NCBI GenBank assembly: GCA_029953675.1
Contig: JAMWBK010000007.1
Span: 682,001 to 746,000 of the forward strand
Reading direction: 5' to 3'
Source: Rhodosorus marinus CCMP1338
Lineage: Eukaryota > Plantae > Rhodophyta
Length of the DNA stretch: 64,000 nt
Below, in pieces: positions 22,391-57,459 of this stretch. The notes beneath the pieces are model-generated. The model was not told the DNA's origin. It worked only from the letters and a program-made list of their open reading frames with translations, and searched no databases. Positions within the stretch are counted from its first letter, which is position 1. Each line of letters opens with the position of its first letter. A program made the position numbers and the translations under genes.

Positions 22391-24724
22391 TTAGGTTGTC
22401 GGTTCAAGTTTGAGCTGCGATTTAACTTGGTGCGTCGCAGTGACCATATTTCTCAACGCAGCGATTGTCTCTGGCCATTTCCTAGTTTTCAAACCGCAGT
22501 CGGGATTCACCACGAGCTGTTCTGGAGGCATGCATGAAAGGAATTCCTGGAGCTTTTGCTGAATGTCAGTGACGGCAGGGACAACGGGAGAGTGAATGTC
22601 GTAGGTTCCTGGTCCCAAGTCCTTTCCATAGCCCGCCTTCTTAAACGCCTCAAGAGTCTCGTTTCCGCTTCGCGCGTTTTCAATGGAGTTGACATCCGCA
22701 TCCAACGCCATAATCGCATCCAAGCAATCGGTGAACTCTGCGTAGCACATATGAGTGTGAACAGAAGTCTCCGCTTTGGCCACGGCGGTGCTGAGCTTGA
22801 AGGCGTCCACCGCCCATTGAAGGTACACGTCTTTCTTGTGGTCTTTGAGCGGCATTCCCTCACGCAGAGCAGGCTCATCCATCTGGACAACTCGGCACCC
22901 TGCGCGTTCAAGGTCTGATACTTCATCCCGTAGACACAACGCAATCTGTAATGCCTGATCCTTTCGAGATATATCCTTCCGAGGGAATGACCAGTTGAGA
23001 ATCGTTACCGGGCCCGTAAGCATTCCCTTAACTGGTTTGTGAGTGAGGCTCTGTGCCACAACGAACTCACGCACCGTCATATCGTGCAAGCGTGTCAGAT
23101 CCGAGTAAACAATCGGTGGACGGACACACCGCGAGCCATAGCTCTGAACCCAGCCGTTCTGAGTGAAGGCAAAGCCGTCGAGCTTTTGGGCAAAGTATTC
23201 TACCATATCAGTACGCTCAGGTTCTCCGTGGACGAGAATGTCGATTCCGAGAGCCTCCTGGACGCCAATGTTGTAAGCGATTTGTTTATCGATTTCTGTC
23301 TCGTAGTCGGACTTGGATATGGTGCCGCTGATGAACCGTCGTCGCAATCGGCGGATCTCATCCGTCTGCGGAAAAGAACCTATCGTAGTTGTGGGAAGTA
23401 TGTGACAATCGGTCATCTGTTTGGGCCGTCGATCGCTGAATTGCTCAGGACGGCTCAAGTCGCTCGCAGTTATCGATGTGATTCGATCCCAAACAGGCTG
23501 CTTCTTTGGGTTCAGCCTGTAGAAGCCTTCCCAGCTCTCCCGCACCTCGCAGAACACATCCGAGGAAGCGGAACTCTCCAATTTCGAGAGGCCTTCACGC
23601 ACAGCGGTAAGCTCGCTTAGCTTTTCGTAGGCAAAGCTCAGAACTGGGGCGAGTCCGAGCTCCTCGTTCTGTTTAAGACTGACCTCCGCCTCTACGGTGT
23701 ATGGTAGGTGGTGCAGAGAGCAGCTCGGTTGCAAACTGATCTTGCTCGGAATCTTACCGCTCCTGAAGCATCCGTCAACTCGCTTCAGAAATTGCGTCAG
23801 CTCGTCAGGGTGAAATTTCCATATCGACCGTCCGTCTACAGCCCCAAGTCCAAGCCTCTTGTCTGCTGGAAATCCCGAAGTTTCCAGCATTGCAATGTTA
23901 TCCCCTCTGGTAAAATCCATAGAAACAGCGGCTACATTGCTGCCGCAAACTGCTCTGTAAACCCTCTCATCAAGGCCATCAAAATACGTCACCAAGTCCA
24001 CGGCCAACCTATCATCGGCAGTAAGGACACCGCGAGTACCATCGCCTCCGTACAAGGCAGCTATCATCTCCAGCATACCCAATCCTTTGCTAGTGACGAG
24101 TATTGGTTCATGTACTTGTACCTCCGTTACTCCCAGCTTCATGATGTGCTCGAACAATTCCACGTAGACATTCGTCAGCTTCTTCACGATGTCGCTCAGA
24201 GAAACATTCTTCAGCTTGCTCAACCCAACGTACGTCAATGGTCCAATTACAATAGGAACAGCGCGTTGGCTTCCGAGAGCATCTATCGCACGCGTTATCT
24301 CTTCCAGAAAAGATGTGAAATTCGCACGAGGGCTACAGTCCTGGTCTATCTCCGGGACTTCGTAGTGGTAGTTCGTATCAAACCATTTGGTCATATCCAT
24401 CGCGGGAATCCCTGTTCGACCCCTCGCCATCGCAAAGTACCGATCGGTATCATCCTCGATACTCTTAAAACGGCTTGGCTCACATCCTAACCTCATCGTC
24501 CAGTCCAGCATATGATCGTAAAGCGTGAAGTCACCAACTCCAATCCGATCAACTCCGGCGGCTAGCTGCACTCTCCAATTCTGTTCCTCCACAGAGTTCG
24601 CAGTATTCAGCAGCTCTTCCAGAGAAATTTGCTGCCTCCAGTACTTCTCCAAGGCATATTTCAACTGCCGAGCCTCTCCAACACGAGGAAACCCAATCGT
24701 CTCAACTGAAATTTCCATTTTCAC
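22391..24724 (-). CDS. METE: Cobalamin-independent methionine synthase, intronless, 777 aa
   Basis: N-terminal GFPRVG, TKWFDTNYHY, PTTTIGSFPQT, HGEPERTDMVEYF, Zn ligands THMCY and NPDCGLKTR. Confidence 0.98.
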   Translation of the reverse strand: MKMEISVETIGFPRVGEARQLKYALEKYWRQQISLEELLNTANSVEEQNWRVQLAAGVDRIGVGDFTLYDHMLDWTMRLGCEPSRFKSIEDDTDRYFAMARGRTGIPAMDMTKWFDTNYHYEVPEIDQDCSPRANFTSFLEEITRAIDALGSQRAVPIVIGPLTYVGLSKLKNVSLSDIVKKLTNVYVELFEHIMKLGVTEVQVHEPILVTSKGLGMLEMIAALYGGDGTRGVLTADDRLAVDLVTYFDGLDERVYRAVCGSNVAAVSMDFTRGDNIAMLETSGFPADKRLGLGAVDGRSIWKFHPDELTQFLKRVDGCFRSGKIPSKISLQPSCSLHHLPYTVEAEVSLKQNEELGLAPVLSFAYEKLSELTAVREGLSKLESSASSDVFCEVRESWEGFYRLNPKKQPVWDRITSITASDLSRPEQFSDRRPKQMTDCHILPTTTIGSFPQTDEIRRLRRRFISGTISKSDYETEIDKQIAYNIGVQEALGIDILVHGEPERTDMVEYFAQKLDGFAFTQNGWVQSYGSRCVRPPIVYSDLTRLHDMTVREFVVAQSLTHKPVKGMLTGPVTILNWSFPRKDISRKDQALQIALCLRDEVSDLERAGCRVVQMDEPALREGMPLKDHKKDVYLQWAVDAFKLSTAVAKAETSVHTHMCYAEFTDCLDAIMALDADVNSIENARSGNETLEAFKKAGYGKDLGPGTYDIHSPVVPAVTDIQQKLQEFLSCMPPEQLVVNPDCGLKTRKWPETIAALRNMVTATHQVKSQLKLEPTT

Positions 24725-27695
24725 TGAAAAGCCTTAATTATTTTCAAAAAACAATACTATAGAGGGCGGCTAGTTCCTTTCTCATGGCTCAAGTCGTGCT
24801 CGGTCACCTCCGAGTCAACCCTAGCAGAGCATTTGGGGTAGCGACCTTATAAGCGCTTCTGATACAAGGTTGACTAAGACGTCCTACTTCGCCTTTGACA
24901 CTCCCCGATCAATCGTAGACTGCTTTGACGATGTTATTGACACGGAACCTCAGGGAGGCCTGCTCCTCTTTGAAGCGTCCTTGCCCACGCCCAAGCCCAA
25001 ACCCTCCGACCATGGTCCTCTTCAGATCAAACCAAAAATATCACTTTTGTAGATACATCAGATCCCCAGATCCAATCTTCCGACAAGGCAACGATCGCTG
25101 CAGCTCCAGTGGAACTTCAAAACTGAAAACCCCCAAATTTAGTAAAAGATTTTTCAACAAACTTCCCCCACCTGCCTCTTTAGTAGTTGATCGGTTGTCT
25201 TTGTAAGTATTAAAAGCCTACCATTCCTTACCCTCTCATTCTCAAGACCCTATAGCAAACCCCCTAACTACAAACTGCCTCAAACCCCTATCTCAACCCC
25301 CACCCTCTTCTCTCCGGATCCCGATCCCACTGTCAGCAGCTCGTCAAAATTCACAGTACATAAAATTTCCAAATTACATAAACAAAAAGTAGTGAAAACA
25401 ATTATTTTCGGAGGAGAACAAAAATATGTCCCGATAAAATAACAAAAAAGAGTTGAAAAACTGGATATCGAATTATGAACGCAATTGTTCCAAATGTAAA
25501 TCATGCTCCTATATTTATTCTTTATTCATGGCCTACGGAAACGAATGTGCCAACGTGGCATACGCACGATTTCGTCTGGTTTAGAAGAGATAAGTTCTTA
25601 ATTAAGCAAAGTTCTCGTCCAAACGCGAACAATATGATTGACTAGTTGATTGATAATGGAAATTATTTTCATTATTGGACAAATTAAGGTTAGTTTTTGT
25701 TTTTAAAAAAGATGACGACTTGTGAAGGATAGACATTTGGAACGATGAAGGGCGGGGGGTTGGGGAGGCATCGGTGACTTTGTTGCCCTGGCCGGAGCTG
25801 CCGCGTTGACCTTCCAGTTTGCTCCTTTCCACGCACGTATCGAAAACATGCGAGGGGTCAGCGCAGTCCCATAAGAGGAGGCTTTGTTCCAGAAGATGAA
25901 GCGCTCGTCGTCGTGGTGCAATGACGCAATCAGTTTGTCCCCCGATGAGTCTCCTGGGGCGGGCATTTGAGTTTCATTTTTCATCGCCTTTTACTGTGCT
26001 GCTATCCGTAACTATCGTTAGAGCTCACTGGGAGTTCCTTTCACAAAAAGAGTGCTTCAAGATCGACAAGGTCCCCCGTTCTTGTTTCTTTGCGTATGAA
26101 ATCGAGGAGCAAGCTTTGAAGGTGACAAGCGTTCTCCGCGACTGCGATTCACAAGCGAAAAGAGTGGGCTGGGTCTCCTTAAAATTTGCACAAATCGTTA
26201 TGGTTCCGTGTTCCTCTCACCCTCAAAAACATCAATTTTCCGCATCGCCAAGCGCAGGAATGGAGAGGGATAGCTTTTAATACCGACGGGATATTAATGG
26301 GTCACTCGGATTCTGCTTCCTATCCATTGAAAATCCAACTGCCGCAACGACAACAAAATTAGAATCTGAACCAAGGAGATCAAAACGATGAAATTCGATG
26401 TGGAGCCTGCTTGAATTGTTGGAGGTTTTGGTCAATCGAATGGAACGGGTTTAGGAAGAGAAAAGCCTGACAAACGAACCGGCGGGGTTCTATTGAACAG
26501 TCTCCCTCAAATGCCCAGAATCCGTTCGAATTCTAGCGATTTAATGTCATCGCTTGCCATGATGGAATTTCGTGCGGCCGATGGGCTGCTTCACGCATTA
26601 ACTCAGAAGCCCATAACATTCATCAATAGCGTCGTATCGATAGTGAACCACCTATGCCGTAGAGCCAGCTTCAAGATTCTAAAGATTCTGCTCAGGGAGT
26701 GCTCTCCAGACGACGACCGAACTGCCATGTCGGAATTCTCAAAGCTCTGTTGCGGCGAAAAACGCACAACGAATTCGAGGGTTACGGCTTTGGTAACAAT
26801 TTGTATCGTCTGGTAATTGTTGGATTACTTAACTCGTGATCCGAAGTGTCAATTATTGTGGATGCCATCCAAAGCTCGAGTAGCTTTGAATACCAACACA
26901 CCTTGTGCGTCTTCGCTAGATCGTGGAATTAGGCTCTTAGTGCGTGCCTGAAAGTTTCGTCAAAATATTTCAGCATGTTCCCTGTATCCACAGACATTTT
27001 CAACGGAGATCTATTTTATTTTCTAATTTATGATAAGCTATGTTTGTATTTTAGTAGTTTATTGATCATGACGCCTTTTTATGGATAGAATTGGTCCTTC
27101 CCCTGGGGCTGGTCTGTTTCACCATTGCGTTGGGACATTGAGCTGGGACATTGCGTTGAGCTGGGACATGTCGCTATGACCATGACTGAATGCAAGCAGT
27201 CTTCCGTAGCTCCTCCTGGATTTGTCAAAATTGAGGAGCTTTTGCATGGCAACACCCCGAGAGCTTTTCCGAACCGCGTGCGAGTTGCTTGGATAAAAGC
27301 AGATTGTTATAACACAGCCTGACGACGTTCTCACCCTTTGCCATCTGTTCCTCCTACTCAGACATCATTCCCAGGAGGTCTCGAACTAGGCTTCACAACA
27401 GGTTGTATTGCTACTGCTCTTCGACAATTTCTGTCGTATGATAGTAGAGGAATATCATCCATCCACTATCATACAACAGGAAAGCTCGAGTAGCCTGGTG
27501 ATCATCAAAACCATGTTTTCACGTGGTAGTAAAGTCGCACGGGTTCGCAACGGACTGCGTGGTAAGCTCTTCACACTATTCTCTCCAGCTCGCTCCAGTT
27601 ATTCGACTCGTGCACGGAAAATATTGAAGCGCAGACCCTAAGACCATACCACCCAGGGACGACGGAAAGCTCAACCTTTCTCAGCCGCAATGCCG

Positions 27696-30558
27696 TCATC
27701 GGGCAACTTGCTTGACCTCGACGAGGTGGCGAAGGACTTTTTCAGCGGCATTGACCACGTTGGTTCCAGGCCCGAAGATCATATCTACACCCTGCTTCTG
27801 CAGCTGAGCAAAGTCGTCCTCGGGGACGACGCCACCGAGAATGAAGGTCATATCCTCACCACCACCTCGCCGTACTTCTGAGATCAACTCCGGAACAGAC
27901 GTTCGGTGTGCCGCGGCGAGCGAGGAGATCCCAACGACATGGACGTCCGACTCGAGCGCCTGCCTCGCTGCTTCCGCCGGAGTCTGAAACAGAGGCCCAA
28001 GATCAACATCAAACCCGAGGTCTGAAAACCCGCTGGCAATGATCTTAGCTCCGCGGTCGTGTCCATCCTGACCGAGTTTCACAACCAACAAACGAGGACG
28101 TCTCCCTGTCTTCGTCTCGAACGATCTCGTCAGCTCCAGAACCTTGGAAACCTCGTCTCCGTGGGAATACTCCTGGCCGTAGACACCGCCGACCAATCCA
28201 GTTGATGCACGATGCCTACCCCAGACGTCCTCCATTGCCGAGCTTATCTCACCAAGCGTGCATCGAACCTCGCCTGCGTGTACACACGCTTCGAGTAGGT
28301 TGTCTCCACCGGAGGCTGCGAGTCGAATCTGAAAAAACGGCGTATTTGGAGGGCAAATGAGATGATTTTCTAACACCGCCACTCTGGGAGACAGATCCCG
28401 GACTTAGCGCTCGCGGAGCAGCGAACACTTACCCGTTCCAGTGCGGAACCGACTTGGTCGCTGTTGCGAGAGTTTCGCACAGATTTCAGCTTTTGGACCT
28501 GCTCGGATCTCACCGAACGCGTATCGACGATGCGCACAGGTACGCGGCTCCTGAGCTTGTCCTCACCGCTATTGTCCTTGCCGTCCTCATCCTGAACCCT
28601 GTGCTTGTTGACGCCAATAATTACCTCCTCACCGGAATCTATCCGAGCCTGCCTTCGAGCTGAAAACTCCTCAATCCTGCGCTTGGGCCAGCCCTCATAT
28701 ATGGATTTAGACATTCCGCCAAACTCATTGACTTCTCGGATGAGCACCTGAGCTCGTGACTCGAGTTCATCTGTGAGAGCCTCCATCATGTACGATCCTC
28801 CCCATGGGTCGGCAACGTTGGGTATTCCGGTCTCCTGCTGCAAGATGAGCTGTGTGTTTCGGGCGATTCTCGCAGAGAAGTTGGTCGGAAGAGCGATGGC
28901 CTCATCTAACGCATTCGTGTGGAGGCTTTGAGTACCACCGAAGACTGCGGCAAGTGCCTCAACTGTTGTTCGGACGACGTTGTTGTACGGATCCTCGGAG
29001 GTGAGCGAATACCCCGACGTCTGGCAGTGCGTTCTCAACTGGAAGGTTTGAGTCTTCTTTGCCTCGGGAAAATTCTCTTTCACCAGACGAGCCCAGAGCC
29101 GTCGGGCAGCTCGAAGCTTCGCGACCTCAGCGTAGAAATCCATACCAATTCCGAAAAAGAAGGAACATCGGGGTGCTATCGAGTCAATCTCTAATCCAGC
29201 CTTCTTCGCACAGTGCAGGTATTCCAGCCCATCTGCAAGGGTAAAACCTAGCTCAGTTACAGCGTCCGCTCCAGCTTCTTGCCTAGTCGTCCAGAGTAGA
29301 AAAGAAAACGAAAACACACAACGAAGTCAGCTTGATTGTGCCGTCAAGCTTTGCACTCCACCGTCACACTCCTTGACCGCATGGGTCGGACCAAGAACGG
29401 ACATCAACATGTAAAGCACGGAAACAGTCAATTGTGTCGCCTTGCCAGTACAATTGACTGCTTCCATGATTTTGCTGAAGTTCCTTGCACTCTCAGGGCT
29501 CATCCGGCGGTTTTGCTTACAACTAACGATGAAACCCAGAGTGGAACGGTCGTCAACATACAAACCAACACGGCTGTAATACAGCTGCTTTAGTTGAGTT
29601 GTTCGTTCCCTTTCCACTCTCAAGCTTCGCCGGTCGGTGGCAAAAGAGCGTAAACAATCCGTCCAACCTGCTGGAGACTAGTCTATCGGATAGTGCATCG
29701 ACCTCGGAGCTGACTCGGTCAAAGTGATCTAGTTTGGAGTTGGACTTACATATGATAGCCAGATACAGATATGGTATTGAACTTTGGCATGTGCTTGCTA
29801 CAGTATCCCATGATGTCGGAGATGATTCTCAGGGACGGTTCGGGCGGATAGATGTAAGTGTTTCTGACCATGAACTCTTTAAGAATATCGTTTTGGATCG
29901 TCCCAGACAGGCTGGAAGGGCTCACGCCAGCTTCCTTCGCTGAAGCCTGGTTTCATATGAGCCGTGCTTTCAGCAACGCATTCCTTGGGCTTTGTTCGGA
30001 GTGCATGAGGTGGCTTTTTCTTACGATAAAAAAGGCGAGTACTGGAAGGACAGCACCATTCATGGTCATTGAAACTGAGACTGAATCGAGAGGAATCCCG
30101 TCGAAGAGTTCCTTCATGTCTTCTACAGTGTCAATAGCGACACCTGCTGCCCCCACATCGTCCGTGACCCGCTCATGGTCTGAATCATAGCCTCGATGGG
30201 TTGCGAGATCGAACGCTACGCTGAGGCCCCGAACGCCTCCCGCCAGACCCTCTTTATAGAATTTGTTCGACTCCCGAGCAGTTGCAAACCCCGCATACTG
30301 TCGAATCGTCCACGGTCGGTTGGTATACATTGTCGAATAAACCCCGCGCGTATAAGGAAACTCCCCCGGAAGCTCCTCGCCTTCTCTTTCACCCGAGTAC
30401 ACGGGATCCATCGGCACTCCAGCTGGAGAAGTCTTCCAGAGTTCCTTAACATCTCGTCGACCTTTCAACTCACGGTTTGCAGCATCCCGCCACCTCTTCG
30501 GTACAATCGTACCAATTCCACGCCTCGAAAGCCCTCCAAACCTCCCCACTCTCCCCAT
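27696..30558 (-). CDS. MUT: Mitochondrial adenosylcobalamin-dependent methylmalonyl-CoA mutase, 4 exons (30558-30025, 29946-29750, 29282-28433, 28328-27696)
   Basis: [42 protein letters not shown] rebuilt across intron 2, B12-binding DGHDRG; Arg-rich presequence. Confidence 0.97.
29283..29749 (-). promoter_or_regulatory. Structured 467-nt intron 2 of MUT with a candidate stop-containing cassette exon (29670-29521)
   Basis: Internal CAG acceptor at 29671 and GTAAGC donor at 29520; in-frame TGA at 29555-29553; a 9-bp stem, a G.U-containing stem and a 16-bp stem. Confidence 0.45.
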
Positions 30559-31151: not shown

Positions 31152-31332
31152 GAGAGGATATGGGATCTAGGATTTCACCAATAGCAGAAGGGCTAGTCCT
31201 ACGCCTCAAACCAGTACTGCTTCTATTATGGTTAACGCGAAAATCGAGAGGATATGGCATCTAGGATTCCAAAAACAGCAGAAAGAGTAGTCCTAGCACC
31301 TCGAACGGTACTGTTTCCCGGCCATGGTTAGC
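31152..31332. repeat. Diverged tandem duplication with a period of about 94 bp
   Basis: GAGAGGATATGG(G/C)ATCTAGGATT...AGCAGAA...TAGTCCTA...GTACTG occurs at 31152 and 31246. Confidence 0.8.
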
Positions 31333-34311: not shown

Positions 34312-36704
34312 ATGGCGGAATATGAGGATGGCGAAGCCGAAGTAGCAGATTCCACTGTGGTGAGGGTGGATGAAGGGAGTGCACCTGATGAAGTGCCTGT
34401 CCCTGGGGCTGACGTAGCGTCAGTACCTGGGGATGATGTTCCTGAGCGGCCTGAGATTATCGACGGTAGTCACAATGAGGTGAAGCCTGTGTTTAAACGG
34501 GCTCCTCCGATGCCGGTTGTTCCCGAAAACCTCAAAGTAAGCCAGCAGGCTCTCCTCCGATGCTCCACGAGCGTCAAGTGGAGAACAGCTATACAGTCCG
34601 GAAGGCGTAGAATGGGTGGACAATATCTGGCACGGAGCTAACGGGCGGTTTGTTTTTTTTGTACGGTTCAACCCCGTAGGACTATCCGCTACCGCCTCCC
34701 ATAGCGAATGACTTTAAACATTTCAAGCCCAGCGTGCAAATGGGCCCGCACAGCGTCATGAAGTTCCGGCCTCCACCGGCAGTGAAAAGTGAAGAAGTAT
34801 GGTTTCAGGGTAGTGTCCCGGAGAGTATCTCAGTATCAATCTCAGACGGTAAGGCTCTGGGAGAGTCCGATATGAGCATTGTCGACTCGGCATGGCTCAA
34901 CGCCAACTCTCTAGCTGTGGCGAAGAGCGACGGGATGGTGGATGTGTACAACGTGCACTCTCAAAAACTCGTGACGCAGTTCCGACCGTATATGGACGAT
35001 GATCCAGTCCAGCATCTGGCCTCCCTGGAGAAGACAATTGATGATGATGACTTTGAAGCAAATTTGCTCAAGGTAGCTACTGTTTCCGGTAAAACGAGAA
35101 CTGTAAGGACGTGGGAGTTGGACGGGGACAGGGCTGAGCTTATTCGGTCCATTGCGGTTCCGAAAGATGGGACCGAAGTCGCTATGTCTGTACCTCTTGT
35201 TTCTAAATTCAAGATGCCGGTTCGCGATGATCTAGTTTCGAAGCCAAAGGAGAGGAGAGAAGGTGAATTTGAATCTGTCCTTCAAGCGGCTGAAGAGGAC
35301 TACGCAGAGCTGGAATCGACATATGCTGTGAAGGCTAAGGAGGCCGAGTTCGATGGGCTTATCGCGGAGGCACAAGCTGAGACTGAGGCCATGGAGGCCA
35401 GTTACGCAGCGGCTGCGGCGGCTGCTGCAGCAGCAGCCGGTACCGCAGTGGTTTTGGGTGCTGGTGAGTCTGATGAAGCGGAGGCAGCGGAGCTTGAAGA
35501 GGCCGAAGAAGAAGTTTCCGCGGAGACAGCAGAGCTTGAAGAGGCCGAGGAAGTAGCTTCTGCAGAGGCAGCAGAACTGGAGCAACCCGCAGAAGCGGCG
35601 GAAACGGCCAAAGAAGATGCTGATTTGGACGCTGTAGCACAAGCAGAAATAGAAGAGGACTCCGCTGCCGCCGACGCTGCCGCTCTGGCTGCAGGTACGG
35701 CCGCTGGTGCCGCCGGTGTTGCCGGCGCTGCTGCGCTAGCAGATGACGAGGCTGCAGGTGTAGCCCAGGCGGTAGGTGCTGACCAGGCCATCGAACAGAC
35801 ATCTGCAAGGTCGGTCGTTAATCAGACAAAAGTACCGCCCGCGGACGATGGAGGTAATGCCGGCGCGATAGCCGGGGCTGCTGTTGGTGGAGCTGCGTTG
35901 GGAGCTCTGGGGACAGCCGCAGTTGTAGCGGCGACTAAGGGAGACGACGAAGCGGAAGAAGAAGAAGAGGTTGCCGAGGAGACTGTCGAAGAGACAGCCC
36001 CTGAAGAAGCTGTGCCAGAGCCTGTTGAAGAAGACCTCGCGGCAGAGCCGACCCTGGAAGAGGTCTCAGCTGAGCCCGTCGCCGAAGAAATCCCCGAGGT
36101 GGATTCGAGTGACGGCGTTGCAGAGGCGGCAGCAATAGGTGGTGTATCTGCGGCTGCTGGCGCCGCCGCTGTCGTAGAGGATACCGACACTGACCCATTC
36201 GCAAAATTCAAGTCTGCAGAGGAGCAGGATATTGCTGCTAAAAAGGCGTATGAAGACCAGCTCACACAGAGGAAGAGCGTGCCTGCCGGTGCAATCGCTG
36301 GAGGTGCAGCCGCTCCAGGTCTTGCGACAGTAGCTGCGGCTGCCGACGATGGAGCGGAAGACGACGAGGCTGAGTATGAAGTGGTTGAGGAGGATCAAGG
36401 CTTCGTCTACGAAGATATCGAGGTGTATGAGCCAATTCCACCCGAGGAACTCAAGCCGGGTGTTGAAGCAAGTACCGCAGCTGGATTGGGGGGCGCAACA
36501 GCAACGGGAGCGGCCGTGGGGGATGCGGCTCTTGCAGAAGATGAGGATGATGAAGAGATAGAAGAATACGTAGAGGAGACCATCGAGGAGCGCTATCTCG
36601 AGGAAGATGAAGACGACGACGATATTATTGAGGAAGAGGCAGTGGAAGAGCTTGAGGTCACGTACGAGGACGGGGTTGTTGTCTCTGTTGAAGGGGCAAA
36701 CTGA
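34312..36704 (+). CDS. Large acidic Ala/Glu-rich protein of unknown function, about 749 aa, 2 exons (34312-34536, 34680-36704), with a short WD40-like segment
   Basis: Phase-0 GTAAGC..GTAG intron joins ORFs 34093 and 34734; beta-propeller-like SAWLNANSLAVAKSDGMVDVYNV and TVSGKTRTVRTWEL; long E/A/D low-complexity tail. Confidence 0.75.
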
Positions 36705-39922: not shown

Positions 39923-40155
39923 CGCTTAACTGAGTTGGGGCCTCGTGTCCCTCCCAAAAATATTTTTGATACGGAAACAAAGAAACGTCGGGAAGAAGAT
40001 TTGGAGGAGGAATCGACTCGTTGAAATAGCGAAACGACGGGCTTTGTTTCTATTACGGATGAAAAGGGCCACAGACGTAAAATTAAAAGGGTAGCCCAAC
40101 AACAATTGCACTGTTATCCACCAGCTCCACCCACTAACTCACGAAGAGCAAAAGG

Positions 40156-40229
40156 CGCCGGCGGAGGGGCTCGAACCCTCGACCACCAGGTTAAAAGCCT
40201 GGCGCTCTAGCCGACTGAGCTACGCCGGC
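40156..40229 (-). tRNA. tRNA-Lys(TTT)
   Basis: Full cloverleaf: GCCGGCG acceptor stem, anticodon loop CTTTTAA, T-loop TTCGAGC. Confidence 0.97.
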
Positions 40230-41401
40230 ATAAATTCCGAAGAAAATTTCTTTTTTTATATAATACAACTTATTTTGAATGAGACGCCCCTGACCTCAGT
40301 ATTCTCCAGGCCCGTTCGAGCTTAACTTCTCAGTTGACTGCAGGCTGAACGATTTTGGTGTGACTAGATTGTAGTAGGTTGTAGAAAACTACCACTCGCT
40401 TCTGCAGTGGGAAGCGAATTCTATGGAGATGTCCTGATTGCTTGATTCGAAACAGCTCTGCTTGCTTGATGCCCATGTAAAGGACTTGTTTAGGTTAGGT
40501 CAACGAGCATTGATATCTGATCCTTCTGAGATCTCGAGATAGAAGTCTTCTCGAACTCCATTGAGGAACGGAGGTTGGAAATGAAACTGTCTCCTTTGGT
40601 ATTCGCTTTGTAGCAGATGTTCAGAAACATCCGAAGCGTCCTATGCCTTCCTACCTGCGTGCATGTTCGGCTATAATCCACTCCATAGACCTGGCGTGAA
40701 ATGCGCACAGACTAAAGATTGAGAATTTACGTTACACGTTCCAACGGTAAAGAAAAGCTACCAATGCTAACGCATTGGTAGTTGACATTACCGTGGCTCG
40801 ACGGACACTGTACAATATCCGAATCATGGCACTGTCGTAGTACTTCTAGCTCCAAACTGAAGCAGCTCTTTAAAGTTGCGATGTGTCCCCAGAGTGCGTT
40901 CGGCGAGAGAGTATTGTGAGACCAAAGCGCTCCAAATGAAAGCCTTGAAACCTGTGATGTTCTCATGAGAGAAGCGGTTGGTAGAGGCAGCCCGCCGCGG
41001 AGAATGAGGAGATGAGTGATACATCAGTGACCGTTGACTTAGCCTGTAAATCCGATCTGCTTTTGGCTTCTCGAGCTGCTTCAACGTGGACTAAGATTCC
41101 CCTCTTCCGTGCTATGCCCTTGAAGCTACTGCGGAGAGGGACTGATTCATACAAGGCGAGCACTTGCGCCATGTCTGAATACTGCCGTGCAAGGAGACTT
41201 TTTTCGTTCCTTTATTTCACCGGAACATGTAGACAATGAGATACGGTCAACACGGTTTTCCAGAAGTGTACTAGGGAAACGTGTTGCTGGTCCGAACGAC
41301 AGCAGAGTCAAGCCGGTAGATGAACATTATGAACAACACTACGAGTTCGGGTGCTGTGTGAATTCAAAAGGACCATATGAACAAGCTCCTTGTCTCTTTA
41401 C

Positions 41402-52201: not shown

Positions 52202-52274
52202 GGGGGTGTAGCTCAATTGGTAGAGTGCGCGCTTAGCATGCGCGAGGTACCGGGATCGAAGCCCGGCATCTCCA
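52202..52274 (+). tRNA. tRNA-Ala(AGC)
   Basis: Cloverleaf with G3.U70 identity pair, anticodon loop TTAGCAT, eukaryotic Ala-type T-loop ATCGAAG, downstream T-run. Confidence 0.97.
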
Positions 52275-53149
52275 CTTTTTTCCCCTAAATGAGGAAATTG
52301 ACTGCTCCCAACAAATAAATTGAAAAACAAAACAGGATCCCACGATATTGAAAAAGCCGGAGGGCAATCAACTTACAGCGATTTATCGAAGAAAAACACA
52401 TACATAGCTTTATTTCTAAACCAGAAAACCAATATCAAAAGGCGGTTTTCAACGAGAAACGCAATACTCTCCAACCACCTCCCTATCCCCTCCCCCGCAC
52501 TTTCAAGAAGCTGCCATCCATGACTCCATATCGTATTTCATCCACCCAGTACCTTCTTCCAAGAATACACGCACAAATTCGAATTTAGGAAAACTTTGGG
52601 AACGCTGCGACGTTAGAATTTGTTATGGACCGCAGCGGAGGCTTTCCCCCCCTCTAAATAAACTACAATCACCTTGCTTCTCGCCCTGCCCTAATGCGAC
52701 TACTGTTTACACGGCTCCTTTGTCATTTCATAGTATATAGTGTTTCGTAAGCGAATCAGAAACTTGAAACATTTCACTGCAAAGCATCGGCCAATCCGTA
52801 CAACGAATACGCATTTATTTTTGATAATCAATTTTACGTCGATCAATGTAGCTATTTGCTCCTTTTTTTAATATTCCCAAATTCCAAAACTAAGGTTTAA
52901 GATTTTTACATATCACAGAAGAAAAACAAGAGCCTCCTTTTTTCTAATTCGCACAAGATCGTAGAAACGGCTAACCATTGTAGAAAACGAGATAATCAAT
53001 AATTAATATTGGATATAGCGATATAAAAACAGTATATACTTGTTAACTCGCCTTTTTTTTTTCTTTTCTTGCATGATAATGATTGATATTTTCATCGAAA
53101 ACGACAGGAGCGATAAAGCGGTGCTTTTTTCCTTGAGCGCGATATGGAT

Positions 53150-55007: not shown

Positions 55008-55365
55008 GAACTGACTGGCAAACGGCAATAGAATAGTAGAGCGCACGAGCCTAATAAAACACTAAATTAGGGATCACAGAATTGTTGAGAGTACTTCTGC
55101 ACAGGTATACAAAGTGCAGAAGCTCAAAGCGGTTATTCGCAACCCCAGCGACCGCCATGGAGATTGACCCGATCGCCTCCGGACAAATCTACAACCTTGT
55201 ACATAATTCAAAAGACGTAACAACACTGCGCTGGATGGTGAAGTCTGTGGTCAAGTACGACTTAGCCTCCCTTCCACACATCTGTTCTCATTCGGCAACG
55301 AAATTCCGAAACTTCCGCCCTGCACCACACCAAAAAAACTAAACTACCACCCAAAAAAAAATGGT

Positions 55366-55447
55366 CGTACTCTGTGAGATTCGAACTCACGCGGGATGAA
55401 CCCACTAACTTAGCAGGCTAGCGCCTTAACCACTCGGCCAAGAGTAC
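55366..55447 (-). tRNA. tRNA-Ser(GCT)
   Basis: GTACTCT/AGAGTAC acceptor stem, long variable arm, anticodon loop CTGCTAA, T-loop TTCGAAT, followed by a T-run terminator. Confidence 0.95.
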
Positions 55448-57459
55448 AACGGTTCAGTGTGGGAGAAATTATAAATTATTATGTAAGATTGTATGTAGCA
55501 CATTGTCCACGATACTCTAGCATTCAAAAATACACTGTATTTCTTGATTCTCTGTTATTGATTGATGCGATGACGTCTGAACTTGGTATGGGCGGCAATA
55601 CGACTGGGAAAGGGTCTAGAGAGTTTCACGGAATTTTTGGTAATATAGGTATTCAATGCCGGTGCCGATCACGTTGCGCGCTCCTCCACAAGGGGCGTCG
55701 GAAAATCCAAACTAAACGGTCGGCGCGAAAGGTTGTGGGTTCCATGGTAAGGAGCCGTTGTCACGCCTGTGTGCTACTCACTCAGCGGTTTTACGAATGC
55801 AGTCCAGTGAACAATTCTCAATCATTCCCTCAAGCGCCTACGTCTGGAAGAAAGATGTACGTCTCAACGGGCGTCTCGCGAAATTCGCCCTGGCAGGGCA
55901 GGGCGAGATCGACTTCCCGAGAATACAAAATAAGGAGCCGAGCACCGCGAGAGTTCTCCCCTGTCCCATCACACCACCAAAATCTACACACGCCCCTAAA
56001 GCATCGAAGCTTATGGAGGCCGGGGCGCAGTCAATCAACGAAAACAATCAAGGAAAAAGGAAAAAAACAAGGCGAGCAAAGGATACCATCAATCACAAGT
56101 CATCAATAAAAAGCACTTAACCCACACTTGGCTGCGCTACTCACGTCGTGAGCAAGTGTTGCCAAGCTCCTCCCCAGCGGAACGATCAGTATCCTACCCG
56201 TATCCGAACAGCATTGGTATCATCATGATACTTTTTTTCAGAGCCTATCTACCCTGAGGAGGCTAAAAGGAGCGATGATGACGCTTCCCAGTCTAACATT
56301 AAAGATGCTTTCTAGTGACATCGACATCCCGCTCCCGATCGCCTTCCGAAATCCCCCCCCTCCCCTGCCCCCCCGCCACTAGCACCACAAATTAGAGAAA
56401 TAAAGCTGCGAGTATCTCATTGCTAACCATAAGCTTTCCCTTGATATGCCGTCTTCTTACTTTTCTCGTTTTTGTAAATAATTTGATGCATTTAACCCTG
56501 GAATCCTGGAAACGAGGCACAAGCTTATCAAGACTGTTCTCCAATCATATACGAATAAATCCCAATATAGAAGCCCACACGCAACATCATTGGTCATAAA
56601 CAGTTCTATCCTTAATATTTTTACGTTATTTGGTTTTGTTTTGCCGTCAGCATGAGTCCCTGGCAGTGATTTGTAATAGAAATACATAGCACACACCTCC
56701 CTCCCGAACATTCATTGGCCCGTTCCAATGGTTGTTGTATGTCGTTGGTATGTCGACCAAGGAAGGTAACACTGGCCATGGATATAGGTAAAATTTTGCC
56801 CAAGGAAAATCAAACTACCAATCGCAATGTAATTGGTTCAAAAAGTAAATATTTTATAAATAAAAACCCTTTTTGTGATCGACTTTATCACCAATCTAAT
56901 ATCGTTTTTCAGTATTTTTCTAAATAGATTTGAAAGGGTGATTTCCGAGTTTCAAAAAAACAACAACACGGATGGTATTTTTTGATTGGAGGATTTTTCG
57001 TTGTACACTAGAAAAAAAGATGAAATAGCCGAACCTCAAAAGGATTATGTTTTGTAGTATTTATTTGATAGGTTTTACTATGTGTGAAAAACGAAGAGAT
57101 TTGTTTCCTTTTGAGACGATATGGTGCCGGACACCGAAAAATTATTACATTTTTGGGAACGGGCGGGAAACATTAGATGATCGATGAGTCCTTGGGTTTC
57201 TTGGCCCATTTCAGAGGGGGTCGGGGCGAGTGAGGCTATATAAGCATTAGGTGGATGAGAAGATCTTCGGAGAGGGAGGTGGGTTTTGGGGAGAGAGGTG
57301 ATGGTAAGGTCTGTTTGACTGTATATGAGGTGTTGTAGTACACTGTAGAAGAGGGAGTTCTTTTTTTGGATGGTTTCAATTTTTCGCTTGTTTTTGTTGG
57401 AATTGTTTTGGTATTTTTCTGGAGGAGGGGGGCGAAGGAAGGGAGAGGGGGTCAGAGCT

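Follow-up and report, generated by a model that had tools for sequence, protein, structure and literature searches.

In long yeast introns, stable stems act in cis on splicing (PMC12350175, PMC2536676). The "zipper stems" and hairpins lying between the 5' splice site and the branch point in Saccharomyces cerevisiae (PMC12350175, PMC2536676, PMC12311795) are the published analogue of the element that we describe here in a red alga. Intronic structures controlling poison exons are also of a known kind (PMC11162794) and lend plausibility to regulated splicing. In the literature that we searched, TPP is the established riboswitch class in algae, plants, and fungi (PMC5882874), a point against a cobalamin riboswitch. 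To find a cobalamin riboswitch in a eukaryote would be a major advance, and the claim of a sequence-only reading that such a switch lies in an intron of a mutase gene therefore needed a real test.

The window is a stretch of 64 kb of nuclear DNA from Rhodosorus marinus CCMP1338 (contig JAMWBK010000007.1), and all features described below are on its reverse strand. Its methylmalonyl-CoA mutase (MCM) gene, NDN08_004421 (27696-30558), was defined by a spliced model and Pfam, with coding exons at 30558-30025, 29946-29750, 29282-28433, and 28328-27696. The spliced product is 100% identical to KAJ8903312.1 (737 aa) and matches PF01642 and PF02310; an exact look-up of these 737 residues returned no record. 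The gene model bears out the earlier claim on intron lengths (78, 467, and 104 nt for introns 1, 2, and 3). Intron 2 (29283-29749, GTAAGT...TAG, phase 2) splits the codon that follows His in the motif GYH(M)QEAG, and its retention leads to an immediate stop (CAT ATG TAA; HM*) and a truncated product of 244 aa. It is long by local standards, the total intron length per gene being 0-246 nt in seven annotated neighbours. This length, much above anything in those seven genes, counts against the explanation that we favour, which leaves it unexplained. A BLAST search of the window found no other copy of the intron and therefore no sign that it originated as a repeated element. Its open frames (98 codons in sense, 85 in antisense) have no Pfam match. 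GAGTG occurs four times within it, and simple arithmetic predicts roughly one 5-mer with that many copies by chance. A metagenome scan with the conserved 18-mer of the exon 2/intron 2 junction gave five chance matches, none of which encodes a mutase.

We compared intron 2 with its orthologues in two other Rhodosorus lineages (L001 and L002), both available because they are retained in transcripts. Pairwise identities among the three copies are 0.74, 0.79, and 0.68, those at 4-fold sites of the same lineages are 0.79, 0.79, and 0.74, and intron 3 stands at 0.79; silent sites have drifted by ~21-26%. Blocks invariant in all three copies reach 13 nt at most. By these comparisons, intron 2 evolves at a neutral rate. 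A more distant relative (contigs L008 and L009) has an intron at the same position, of 208 nt, in which we found neither sequence similarity to the R. marinus intron nor a hairpin of the sort described below. A candidate branch site, CTGAC (29326-29330; CTGAT in L002), lies ~44 nt upstream of the 3' splice site; its consensus suggests this role. The hairpin that had been noticed there is present with 7 bp (29350-29344/29335-29329) and overlaps the candidate site, as does a second short helix (29715-29708/29332-29325). Both are of chance length in shuffle tests.

A single structure stands out from this background. The 16-bp stem described in the sequence-only reading exists and grows to 19 bp once G.U pairs are counted (29468-29450/29435-29417), closing a 14-nt loop in the sense-strand RNA midway between the internal donor and the branch site. 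None of 300 dinucleotide shuffles of intron 2 reached a 19-bp stem. The hairpin (29417-29468) has local z-scores of -6.4, -5.0, and -3.4 in the three lineages, a structure conservation index (SCI) of 0.87, and a column-shuffle z of -7.4. Eight of its nine one-sided substitutions keep pairing and one further pair is compensatory (T-A to C-G), counts that come from a manual alignment of the arms in three sequences, fewer than a statistical covariation test takes. We aligned the arms by hand because MAFFT had placed the 3' arm wrongly. All three lineages keep the hairpin, which, on this comparative evidence, makes it the single element of intron 2 under selection. The same cannot be said of the intron as a whole. 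Its minimum free energy (MFE) has a z of -3.6 in the window that is not matched in the orthologues (-0.75 and -1.7), and we therefore claim no global structure; the covariation term of RNAalifold is positive (+4.9) and gives no net support to a global fold.

Such a hairpin could be a small-RNA precursor (a mirtron-like microRNA) or an RNase III-type cleavage site that degrades unspliced pre-mRNA, with neutral spacer making up the remainder of the intron. A strong stem conserved on the sense strand only, with a diverging loop, fits this possibility, as do the imperfect extension of the lower stem in the window sequence and the fact that few local inverted repeats of the 64 kb are as strong. Yet the continuous stem, of 19 bp in the window, is shorter, bulged, and rich in G.U pairs in L002; the microRNA matches in Rfam are noise (E ~9, other strand); and C/D and H/ACA boxes are either missing or unconserved. 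We therefore regard a small-RNA or RNase III role as improbable. Likewise, the suggestion that an snoRNA might provide a mundane explanation found no Rfam snoRNA match, and neither L001 nor L002 retains the UGAUGA-like and ACA motifs of the window.

What do transcripts say about the intron? The evidence consists of the GenBank annotation and of assemblies of the marine microbial eukaryote transcriptome project (MMETSP), that is, of assembled isoforms and not reads. A fully spliced 737-aa form exists, along with MMETSP isoforms retaining intron 1, 2, or 3; intron 2 itself is retained in contigs L001, L002, L010, and L011. Retention is thus a property of all three MCM introns and is not specific to the second. 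GenBank holds a second isoform, KAJ8903313.1 (758 aa), which we reproduced exactly by including a 63-nt cassette exon (29562-29624) that is in frame and has no stop. The genome was annotated with BRAKER2 and RNA-seq hints, a procedure that, as we understand it, reports alternative transcripts only if the hints require them. The AG acceptor of the cassette (29625-29626, GCGAAG/C) falls within the 13-nt block invariant across the three lineages, although we take an AAG acceptor to be weak by consensus. Its donor (29556-29561) reads GTATGT, changes to GTACGT in L002, and is lost in L001 (ATATGT). The cassette swaps a Met for 22 residues and so inserts a net 21 beside the His in the conserved motif GYH. 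This His presumably corresponds to the catalytic His244 of published accounts, and because the insertion adjoins it, the 758-aa isoform is probably inactive as an enzyme.

The cassette shows few marks of constraint. Mean identity in the region is 0.68 across the three lineages, not above the neutral rate, and the encoded peptide differs between the window and L002 by 3 synonymous versus 6 nonsynonymous codons. The frame is open in these two lineages, and the L001 copy is degenerate, with an in-frame TAG and no GT donor. None of the MMETSP isoforms of two lineages contains the cassette. A protein search with the cassette-junction peptide returned no cassette protein, a weak negative given that it also missed the GenBank isoform itself. 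Inclusion is probably low, with the cassette isoform making up a minority of the mRNA.

How far, then, does intron 2 resemble the proposed switch? In that proposal, a CAG ending at 29671 and a GTAAGC starting at 29520 (29520-29515) would bound a hypothetical 150-nt poison exon (29521-29670), predicted from sequence only, and two alternative pairings of CACTCT would control its use in response to cobalamin. The motifs exist as described: both splice-like sites are there, TGA 29555-29553 is the first stop in frame within the 150-nt segment, AGAGTGGAA (29620-29612) is perfectly complementary over 9 bp to TTCCACTCT (29546-29538), a second AGAGTG occurs at 29493-29488, and the GGGTTTCATC/GATGAGCCC hairpin carries the internal donor at its tip. 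As observations they are thus all present, and the long hairpin alone exceeds chance. A perfect stem of at least 9 bp appears in 32% of dinucleotide shuffles of intron 2, and the donor-tip hairpin (z = -1.4, +0.1, and -0.3 in the three lineages) is neither significant nor conserved. The internal donor at 29520 is GCAAGC in L001, its GT replaced by GC. The either/or pairing switch is thus not supported. The prediction of an internal exon holds in a broad sense, with the boundaries misplaced: the annotated one spans 29624-29562 instead of 29670-29521, and the sites at 29671 and 29520 are used by none of the isoforms of the annotation or the MMETSP assemblies. Because it is in frame and stop-free, the annotated cassette is not a premature-stop poison exon; the TGA directly follows its donor.

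The proposed link to cobalamin fares no better. We searched Rfam with the whole window at the gathering score and with 29200-29830 at E<=10 using permissive filters. Neither the cobalamin riboswitch (RF00174) nor the related AdoCbl classes matched in the window or in intron 2, and intron 2 contains no TPP (RF00059) or other family. The matches at E<=10 are noise: hveRNA, TLS-PK6, and two microRNA models (E ~8-9, other strand). Conservation of intron 2 (0.68-0.79) falls short of that of an aptamer and is similar to that of 4-fold sites (0.74-0.79). A cobalamin riboswitch in which the two CACTCT pairings control the sites at 29671 and 29520, and with them the stop-containing exon, can invoke the existence of the motifs and the fact that the host gene encodes a B12-dependent enzyme. 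It has to contend with the lack of any aptamer match at E<=10, invariant blocks of at most 13 nt in a neutrally diverging intron, the decay of both alternative pairings in L001, a donor-tip hairpin that never beats shuffles, an internal donor turned to GC, splice sites used by no isoform, and an unrelated intron at the orthologous position of the distant relative. We give it almost no credence. The test of the riboswitch, as far as sequence can provide one, is negative: there is no aptamer, evolution is neutral, and conservation does not extend beyond the genus. No part of intron 2 is recognisable as a ligand-binding aptamer, and a B12 switch in this intron is not supported. The interpretation of the sequence-only reading thus holds in part, for an alternative exon and for one stem, and is not supported for the switch and its cobalamin link.

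Regulation of another kind deserves more weight. The cassette, retention, or both could be used deliberately to reduce the level of functional mutase mRNA, a form of unproductive splicing in which the ratio of isoforms would depend on RNA structure and a trans-acting protein; the signal might be B12 or the supply of propionyl-CoA, and no contact between RNA and ligand would be needed. One observation that fits is an imperfect stem-loop (29538-29620), closed by the 9-bp stem 29620-29612/29546-29538, within which lie most of the cassette exon and the donor of that exon. It beats shuffles in the window (z = -3.8) and in L002 (-2.8), which could mean regulated inclusion rather than noise. It does not in L001 (+0.25), and at the alignment level its z of -2.3 is equalled by 1.7% of nulls, which is marginal. 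An annotated alternative exon, the conserved hairpin at 29468-29417, and the exceptional local length of the intron would also fit regulation, as would the position of METE, the gene of the B12-independent methionine synthase, immediately downstream of MCM. These points are countered by the neutral divergence of the intron, by the occurrence of retention in all three introns, and by the nature of the cassette, which lacks a premature stop, is absent from the MMETSP isoforms of two lineages, and is not conserved, L001 having lost its donor and its stem and gained an in-frame stop. On balance, we consider regulated unproductive splicing unlikely. It is more doubtful still that the hairpin and the exon-enclosing stem form a structure-gated device tuning productive mutase mRNA to B12 status, the sensor being a protein or, with the lowest probability, the RNA. 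Were it true, it would amount to cofactor-responsive control of the splicing of a B12-dependent enzyme in a eukaryote.

A response to B12 could not have shown in these transcriptomes because all come from B12-containing media: CCMP1338 is grown in L1, which we understand to contain B12, as presumably do the culture media of MMETSP. No cobalamin riboswitch was found upstream of METE either (Rfam, E<=10). We take METE to be the classic B12-repressed gene of other algae, and its adjacency to MCM therefore makes the locus convenient for experiments on B12-dependent regulation. As a carrier of METE, R. marinus probably tolerates medium lacking B12.

The account that we consider probable is simpler: a long, neutral intron, prone to retention, that harbours a minor alternative exon and a single conserved cis hairpin. 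Intron 2 would be an ordinary spliceosomal intron of the GT-AG type, old and conserved in its position, that grew long within the genus Rhodosorus. Being long and containing internal splice-like sites, it would be imperfectly processed, with three outcomes: 1) in most mRNA, 29750 would be joined to 29282 to give the 737-aa enzyme; 2) in a minority, the weakly defined 63-nt exon would be included to give the 758-aa isoform; and 3) in some transcripts, the whole intron would be kept and translation would end at once. The hairpin at 29468-29417 may influence splicing in cis by bringing donor and branch site effectively closer together, by masking cryptic sites, or both, a role that we infer by analogy. 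The locus thus documents, in a little-studied class of red algae, a long intron whose annotated alternative exon keeps the reading frame and probably abolishes enzyme activity. It also provides, in a hairpin kept by pairing-compatible changes, a candidate cis-acting splicing element in algae, where to our knowledge almost nothing is known of such hairpins.

Four described systems bear comparison with the locus. With eukaryotic TPP riboswitches (PMC3597705, PMC4260697, PMC5882874) it shares the idea of an intronic RNA choosing splice sites in a cofactor-related gene; unlike them, intron 2 has neither an aptamer detectable by covariance models nor deep conservation, and MCM uses its cofactor and neither makes nor imports it. 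Like the regulatory structures of poison exons (PMC11162794), it has an internal exon flanked by intronic pairing and a short helix over a candidate branch site, whereas its exon lacks a premature stop, exon and flanks are not conserved above neutrality, and the branch-site helices are of chance length. Retention, with its early stop and its occurrence at every MCM intron, does not differ in substance from the widespread intron retention of the red alga Galdieria sulphuraria (PMC5880011), and we regard this part of the picture as ordinary. The zipper stems of S. cerevisiae differ in that the Rhodosorus helix is a local hairpin that leaves the ends of the intron unpaired, is known from three sequences, and has a putative effect on splicing. 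The likeness lies in the setting: in both cases, an organism of short introns has one exceptionally long intron in which a strong pre-mRNA helix has been maintained between the donor and the branch site.

The product of the minus-strand methylmalonyl-CoA mutase gene (MCM) carries the Pfam domains PF01642 and PF02310, and its best protein match, NDN08_004421 ("hypothetical protein", Rhodosorus marinus), is 100% identical over its full length. Four exons (30558-30025, 29946-29750, 29282-28433 and 28328-27696) and introns of 78, 467 and 104 nt make up a spliced model that equals the 737-aa GenBank protein exactly, and the bounds that a sequence-only reading had given for intron 2 (29749-29283, GTAAGT...TAG) are correct. 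This intron really is long relative to its surroundings: the total intron per gene in seven neighbouring genes, taken from the NCBI annotation as gene span minus coding length, is 0 to 246 nt. The nuclear assembly of CCMP1338 (GCA_029953675.1; MCM lies on contig JAMWBK010000007.1), a single-celled red alga belonging to the Stylonematophyceae, was annotated by BRAKER2, and the RNA-seq hints used for this were obtained from L1-medium cultures (PMC10250338). Around the gene lie a duplicated 72-nt direct repeat (31152-31223 and 31246-31317; copies 75% identical and 94 nt apart), which precedes the start codon by about 600-750 nt and stands between MCM and the divergent ribosomal protein L5 gene, and, just downstream of the stop codon, an inverted repeat (27416-27494; 38-nt arms, 74% complementary, 3-nt spacer) within the stretch covered by the transcripts L001 and L002. 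Farther away, a 656-codon open frame (34734-36704, plus strand) is of low complexity and very rich in Ala, Glu and Asp; several antisense open frames overlapping it are likely composition artefacts.

L001 and L002 are transcript assemblies of MCM from two other Rhodosorus lineages (JGI contigs), in which introns 1 and 3 are precisely spliced out and intron 2 is kept, providing two orthologous sequences (454 and 467 nt). Both contigs seem to be re-assemblies of Rhodosorus samples from the marine microbial eukaryote transcriptome project (MMETSP); L001-lineage proteins cluster with an MMETSP0315 sequence, L002-lineage proteins with MMETSP transcripts 40389-40396. The pairwise identity of intron 2 across the three lineages (0.74, 0.79 and 0.68) is equal to or below two neutral yardsticks, the four-fold degenerate sites of MCM in the same comparison (0.79, 0.79 and 0.74) and intron 3 (0.79, copy from transcript contig L010). 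No sub-region of the three-lineage alignment stands out, and its longest invariant block is 13 nt. A more distant relative, whose mutase is 73% identical, is represented by the Logan genomic contigs L008 and L009 and has introns at the same three positions (194, 208 and 471 nt); its intron 2 has neither shared sequence nor a comparable hairpin with that of Rhodosorus. The longest mutase intron of this relative is not intron 2 (L008:1559-1766), in which a GGGGT repeat run stands opposite a C-rich tract, but intron 3 (L008:2611-3081), which contains a GT microsatellite.

These comparisons bear on the proposal that intron 2 holds a cobalamin riboswitch. Of the two features of such an element that can be sought in silico, a match to the family model and conservation above the neutral level, intron 2 has neither. 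Rfam 15 at gathering scores returned three nuclear tRNA genes from the whole window (Lys-TTT, 40154-40229, minus; Ala-AGC, 52202-52275, plus; Ser-GCT, 55362-55448, minus) and nothing within MCM, while permissive filters at E<=10 over 29200-29830 gave four noise matches, with no cobalamin, TPP or other aptamer and no snoRNA. Moreover, intron 2 of the more distant relative is unrelated in sequence, which is unlike the behaviour of an aptamer. The literature searched gives TPP as the established riboswitch class of algae, plants and fungi (PMC5882874); guanidine aptamers in vertebrate RNAs were described in 2025 (PMC12335538), and we found no report of a cobalamin riboswitch in eukaryotes. We consider such a riboswitch in intron 2 extremely improbable. 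Since L1 medium contains B12, and the MMETSP cultures had it too, the transcriptomes are uninformative on B12 responsiveness. The next gene downstream of MCM, on the same strand, is the intronless METE (cobalamin-independent methionine synthase; 22391-24724; Pfam Meth_synt_1 and Meth_synt_2), a classic B12-repressed gene of other algae, and the spacer of about 3 kb is without annotated gene. On its upstream side (24500-27800), Rfam at E<=10 gave no match, cobalamin riboswitch included.

The locus has a second GenBank product, KAJ8903313.1 (758 aa), which is reproduced exactly by a model with an extra 63-nt exon (29624-29562, minus strand; acceptor GCGAAG/C, donor /GTATGT at 29561-29556) that turns intron 2 into two introns of 125 and 279 nt. 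BRAKER outputs an alternative transcript only if RNA-seq hints call for it, so junction reads for this cassette exon probably exist. The sequence-only reading had predicted a 150-nt poison exon (29670-29521) here. Its CAG ending at 29671 and GTAAGC starting at 29520 are both present, with TGA 29555-29553 as first in-frame stop between them, and an alternative exon does exist inside this segment; its boundaries and frame are others, and the TGA is the triplet directly after its donor. The annotated exon has neither a stop nor conservation and is not a poison exon. The 21 residues that it adds are inserted immediately behind the His of the invariant GYHMQEAG motif. This His has a gap-free alignment both to the human enzyme and to the alpha chain of the Propionibacterium shermanii mutase (chain index 243), and we take it for the residue known in the literature as catalytic His244. 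As the insertion adjoins this putative catalytic residue, the 758-aa form is expected to be inactive. The cassette codons differ between the window and L002 by three synonymous and six nonsynonymous changes, and the L001 copy has AT in place of the donor GT and a TAG in the frame; judging from these copies, the exon is under no selection as coding sequence. A protein database search with the cassette peptide returned no containing protein, a weak result given that the GenBank isoform itself was also missed. The sense frame of the exon stays open 98 codons past its donor (29327-29623, minus strand); it has no Pfam match, is closed in L001 and L002, and is probably due to chance. The purine-rich start of the exon, AGAGTGGAAAGGGAA (29606-29620, minus strand), can pair with the polypyrimidine tract of the 3' splice site, TTTCTTTTCTACTCT (29293-29307, minus strand), in a helix of 15 bp including G.U, of which 14 pairs are kept in L002 by hand count and which is broken in L001; this could be a composition effect.

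A survey of isoforms in the L002 lineage, made from a protein cluster listing and its sequences, comprises the fully spliced form (737 aa), forms retaining intron 1 (201 and 534 aa), intron 2 (244/241 aa ending ...SGYHM, and 448 aa) or, in frame, intron 3 (774 and 571 aa), and combined retention isoforms; no listed product has the length of about 282 aa expected from the 150-nt exon. Each intron is retained in some isoform, so that retention characterises all three of them, consistent with intron retention as reported in red algae (PMC5880011). Retained intron 3 lacks a stop in this lineage (L010:2242-2352); the same frame in the window (28329-28432, minus strand) hits one. Retention of intron 2 leads to an immediate translation stop (CAT ATG TAA), as regulated unproductive splicing with a protein sensor might use, and this explanation, set beside retention in introns 1 and 3, is unlikely.

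The RNA motifs of the sequence-only reading are all found at their stated coordinates; most of them are no more than chance expectation, one long stem being the exception. AGAGTGGAA (29620-29612) is perfectly complementary to TTCCACTCT (29546-29538), AGAGTG recurs at 29493-29488, the hairpin formed by GGGTTTCATC and GATGAGCCC, bulged and with the internal donor at its tip, is found as described, and a hairpin does touch CTGAC (29330-29326), with 7 bp (29350-29344/29335-29329) instead of 6. Perfect stems of 9 bp or more appear in 32% of dinucleotide shuffles of intron 2, and the donor-tip hairpin is no more stable than its shuffled versions (z = -1.4). The whole-intron MFE z-score is -3.6 in the window and -0.75 and -1.7 in the orthologues; RNAalifold found no net covariation in the whole-intron alignment, and tests by region show no difference from column-shuffled alignments for the 5' and 3' parts or for the donor tip. 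The stem-loop closed by the 9-bp stem, enclosing the cassette exon and its donor, is marginal in the alignment (z = -2.3, equalled by 1.7% of nulls), with single-sequence z-scores of -3.8 in the window and -2.8 in L002, and is absent in L001 (+0.25).

The exception is the stem reported with 16 bp and one G.U pair, which is confirmed and, with G.U, reaches 19 bp (29468-29450/29435-29417), a length attained by none of 300 shuffles. The hairpin has a local z-score of -6.4 and belongs to the small set of strongest local inverted repeats found in the 64-kb window. It is clearly conserved across the three Rhodosorus lineages (structure conservation index 0.87; column-shuffle z = -7.4, matched by 0 of 300 nulls), a comparison of three sequences with arms aligned knowing the structure. 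In this structure-aware alignment, a standard pair survives 8 of the 9 one-sided substitutions (P from 1e-4 to 0.02 if random substitutions are compatible at 0.25-0.5), both partners of one pair differ (T-A has become C-G in L001, T.G in L002), two single-base indels make bulges, and the loop diverges in sequence and length (14, 15 and 20 nt). Almost all compatible changes make or resolve G.U pairs, which are A.C mismatches on the opposite strand, and therefore place selection on the pre-mRNA strand, in agreement with the sense-strand preference proposed for this stem. The hairpin might also be a small-RNA precursor or an RNase III site, which we hold to be quite improbable.

The best-supported picture, and a reasonably probable one, is that of a neutral long intron with imperfect splicing, a minor in-frame exon, retention and one cis-acting hairpin. 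An old intron would have been lengthened in Rhodosorus and would now drift neutrally, its imperfect splicing giving rise to the minor alternative exon and to retention. The hairpin, which sits halfway from the internal donor to the branch site, would act in cis and probably help the spliceosome, either by shortening the effective distance or by hiding cryptic sites. GenBank already lists the alternative isoform; the novelty, which is modest, lies in the conserved hairpin and the three-lineage comparison. Stems within long introns of yeast (PMC12350175, PMC2536676) offer an analogue for the role of the hairpin, and MCM intron 2 has those features of a structured long intron of this type that are testable in silico.
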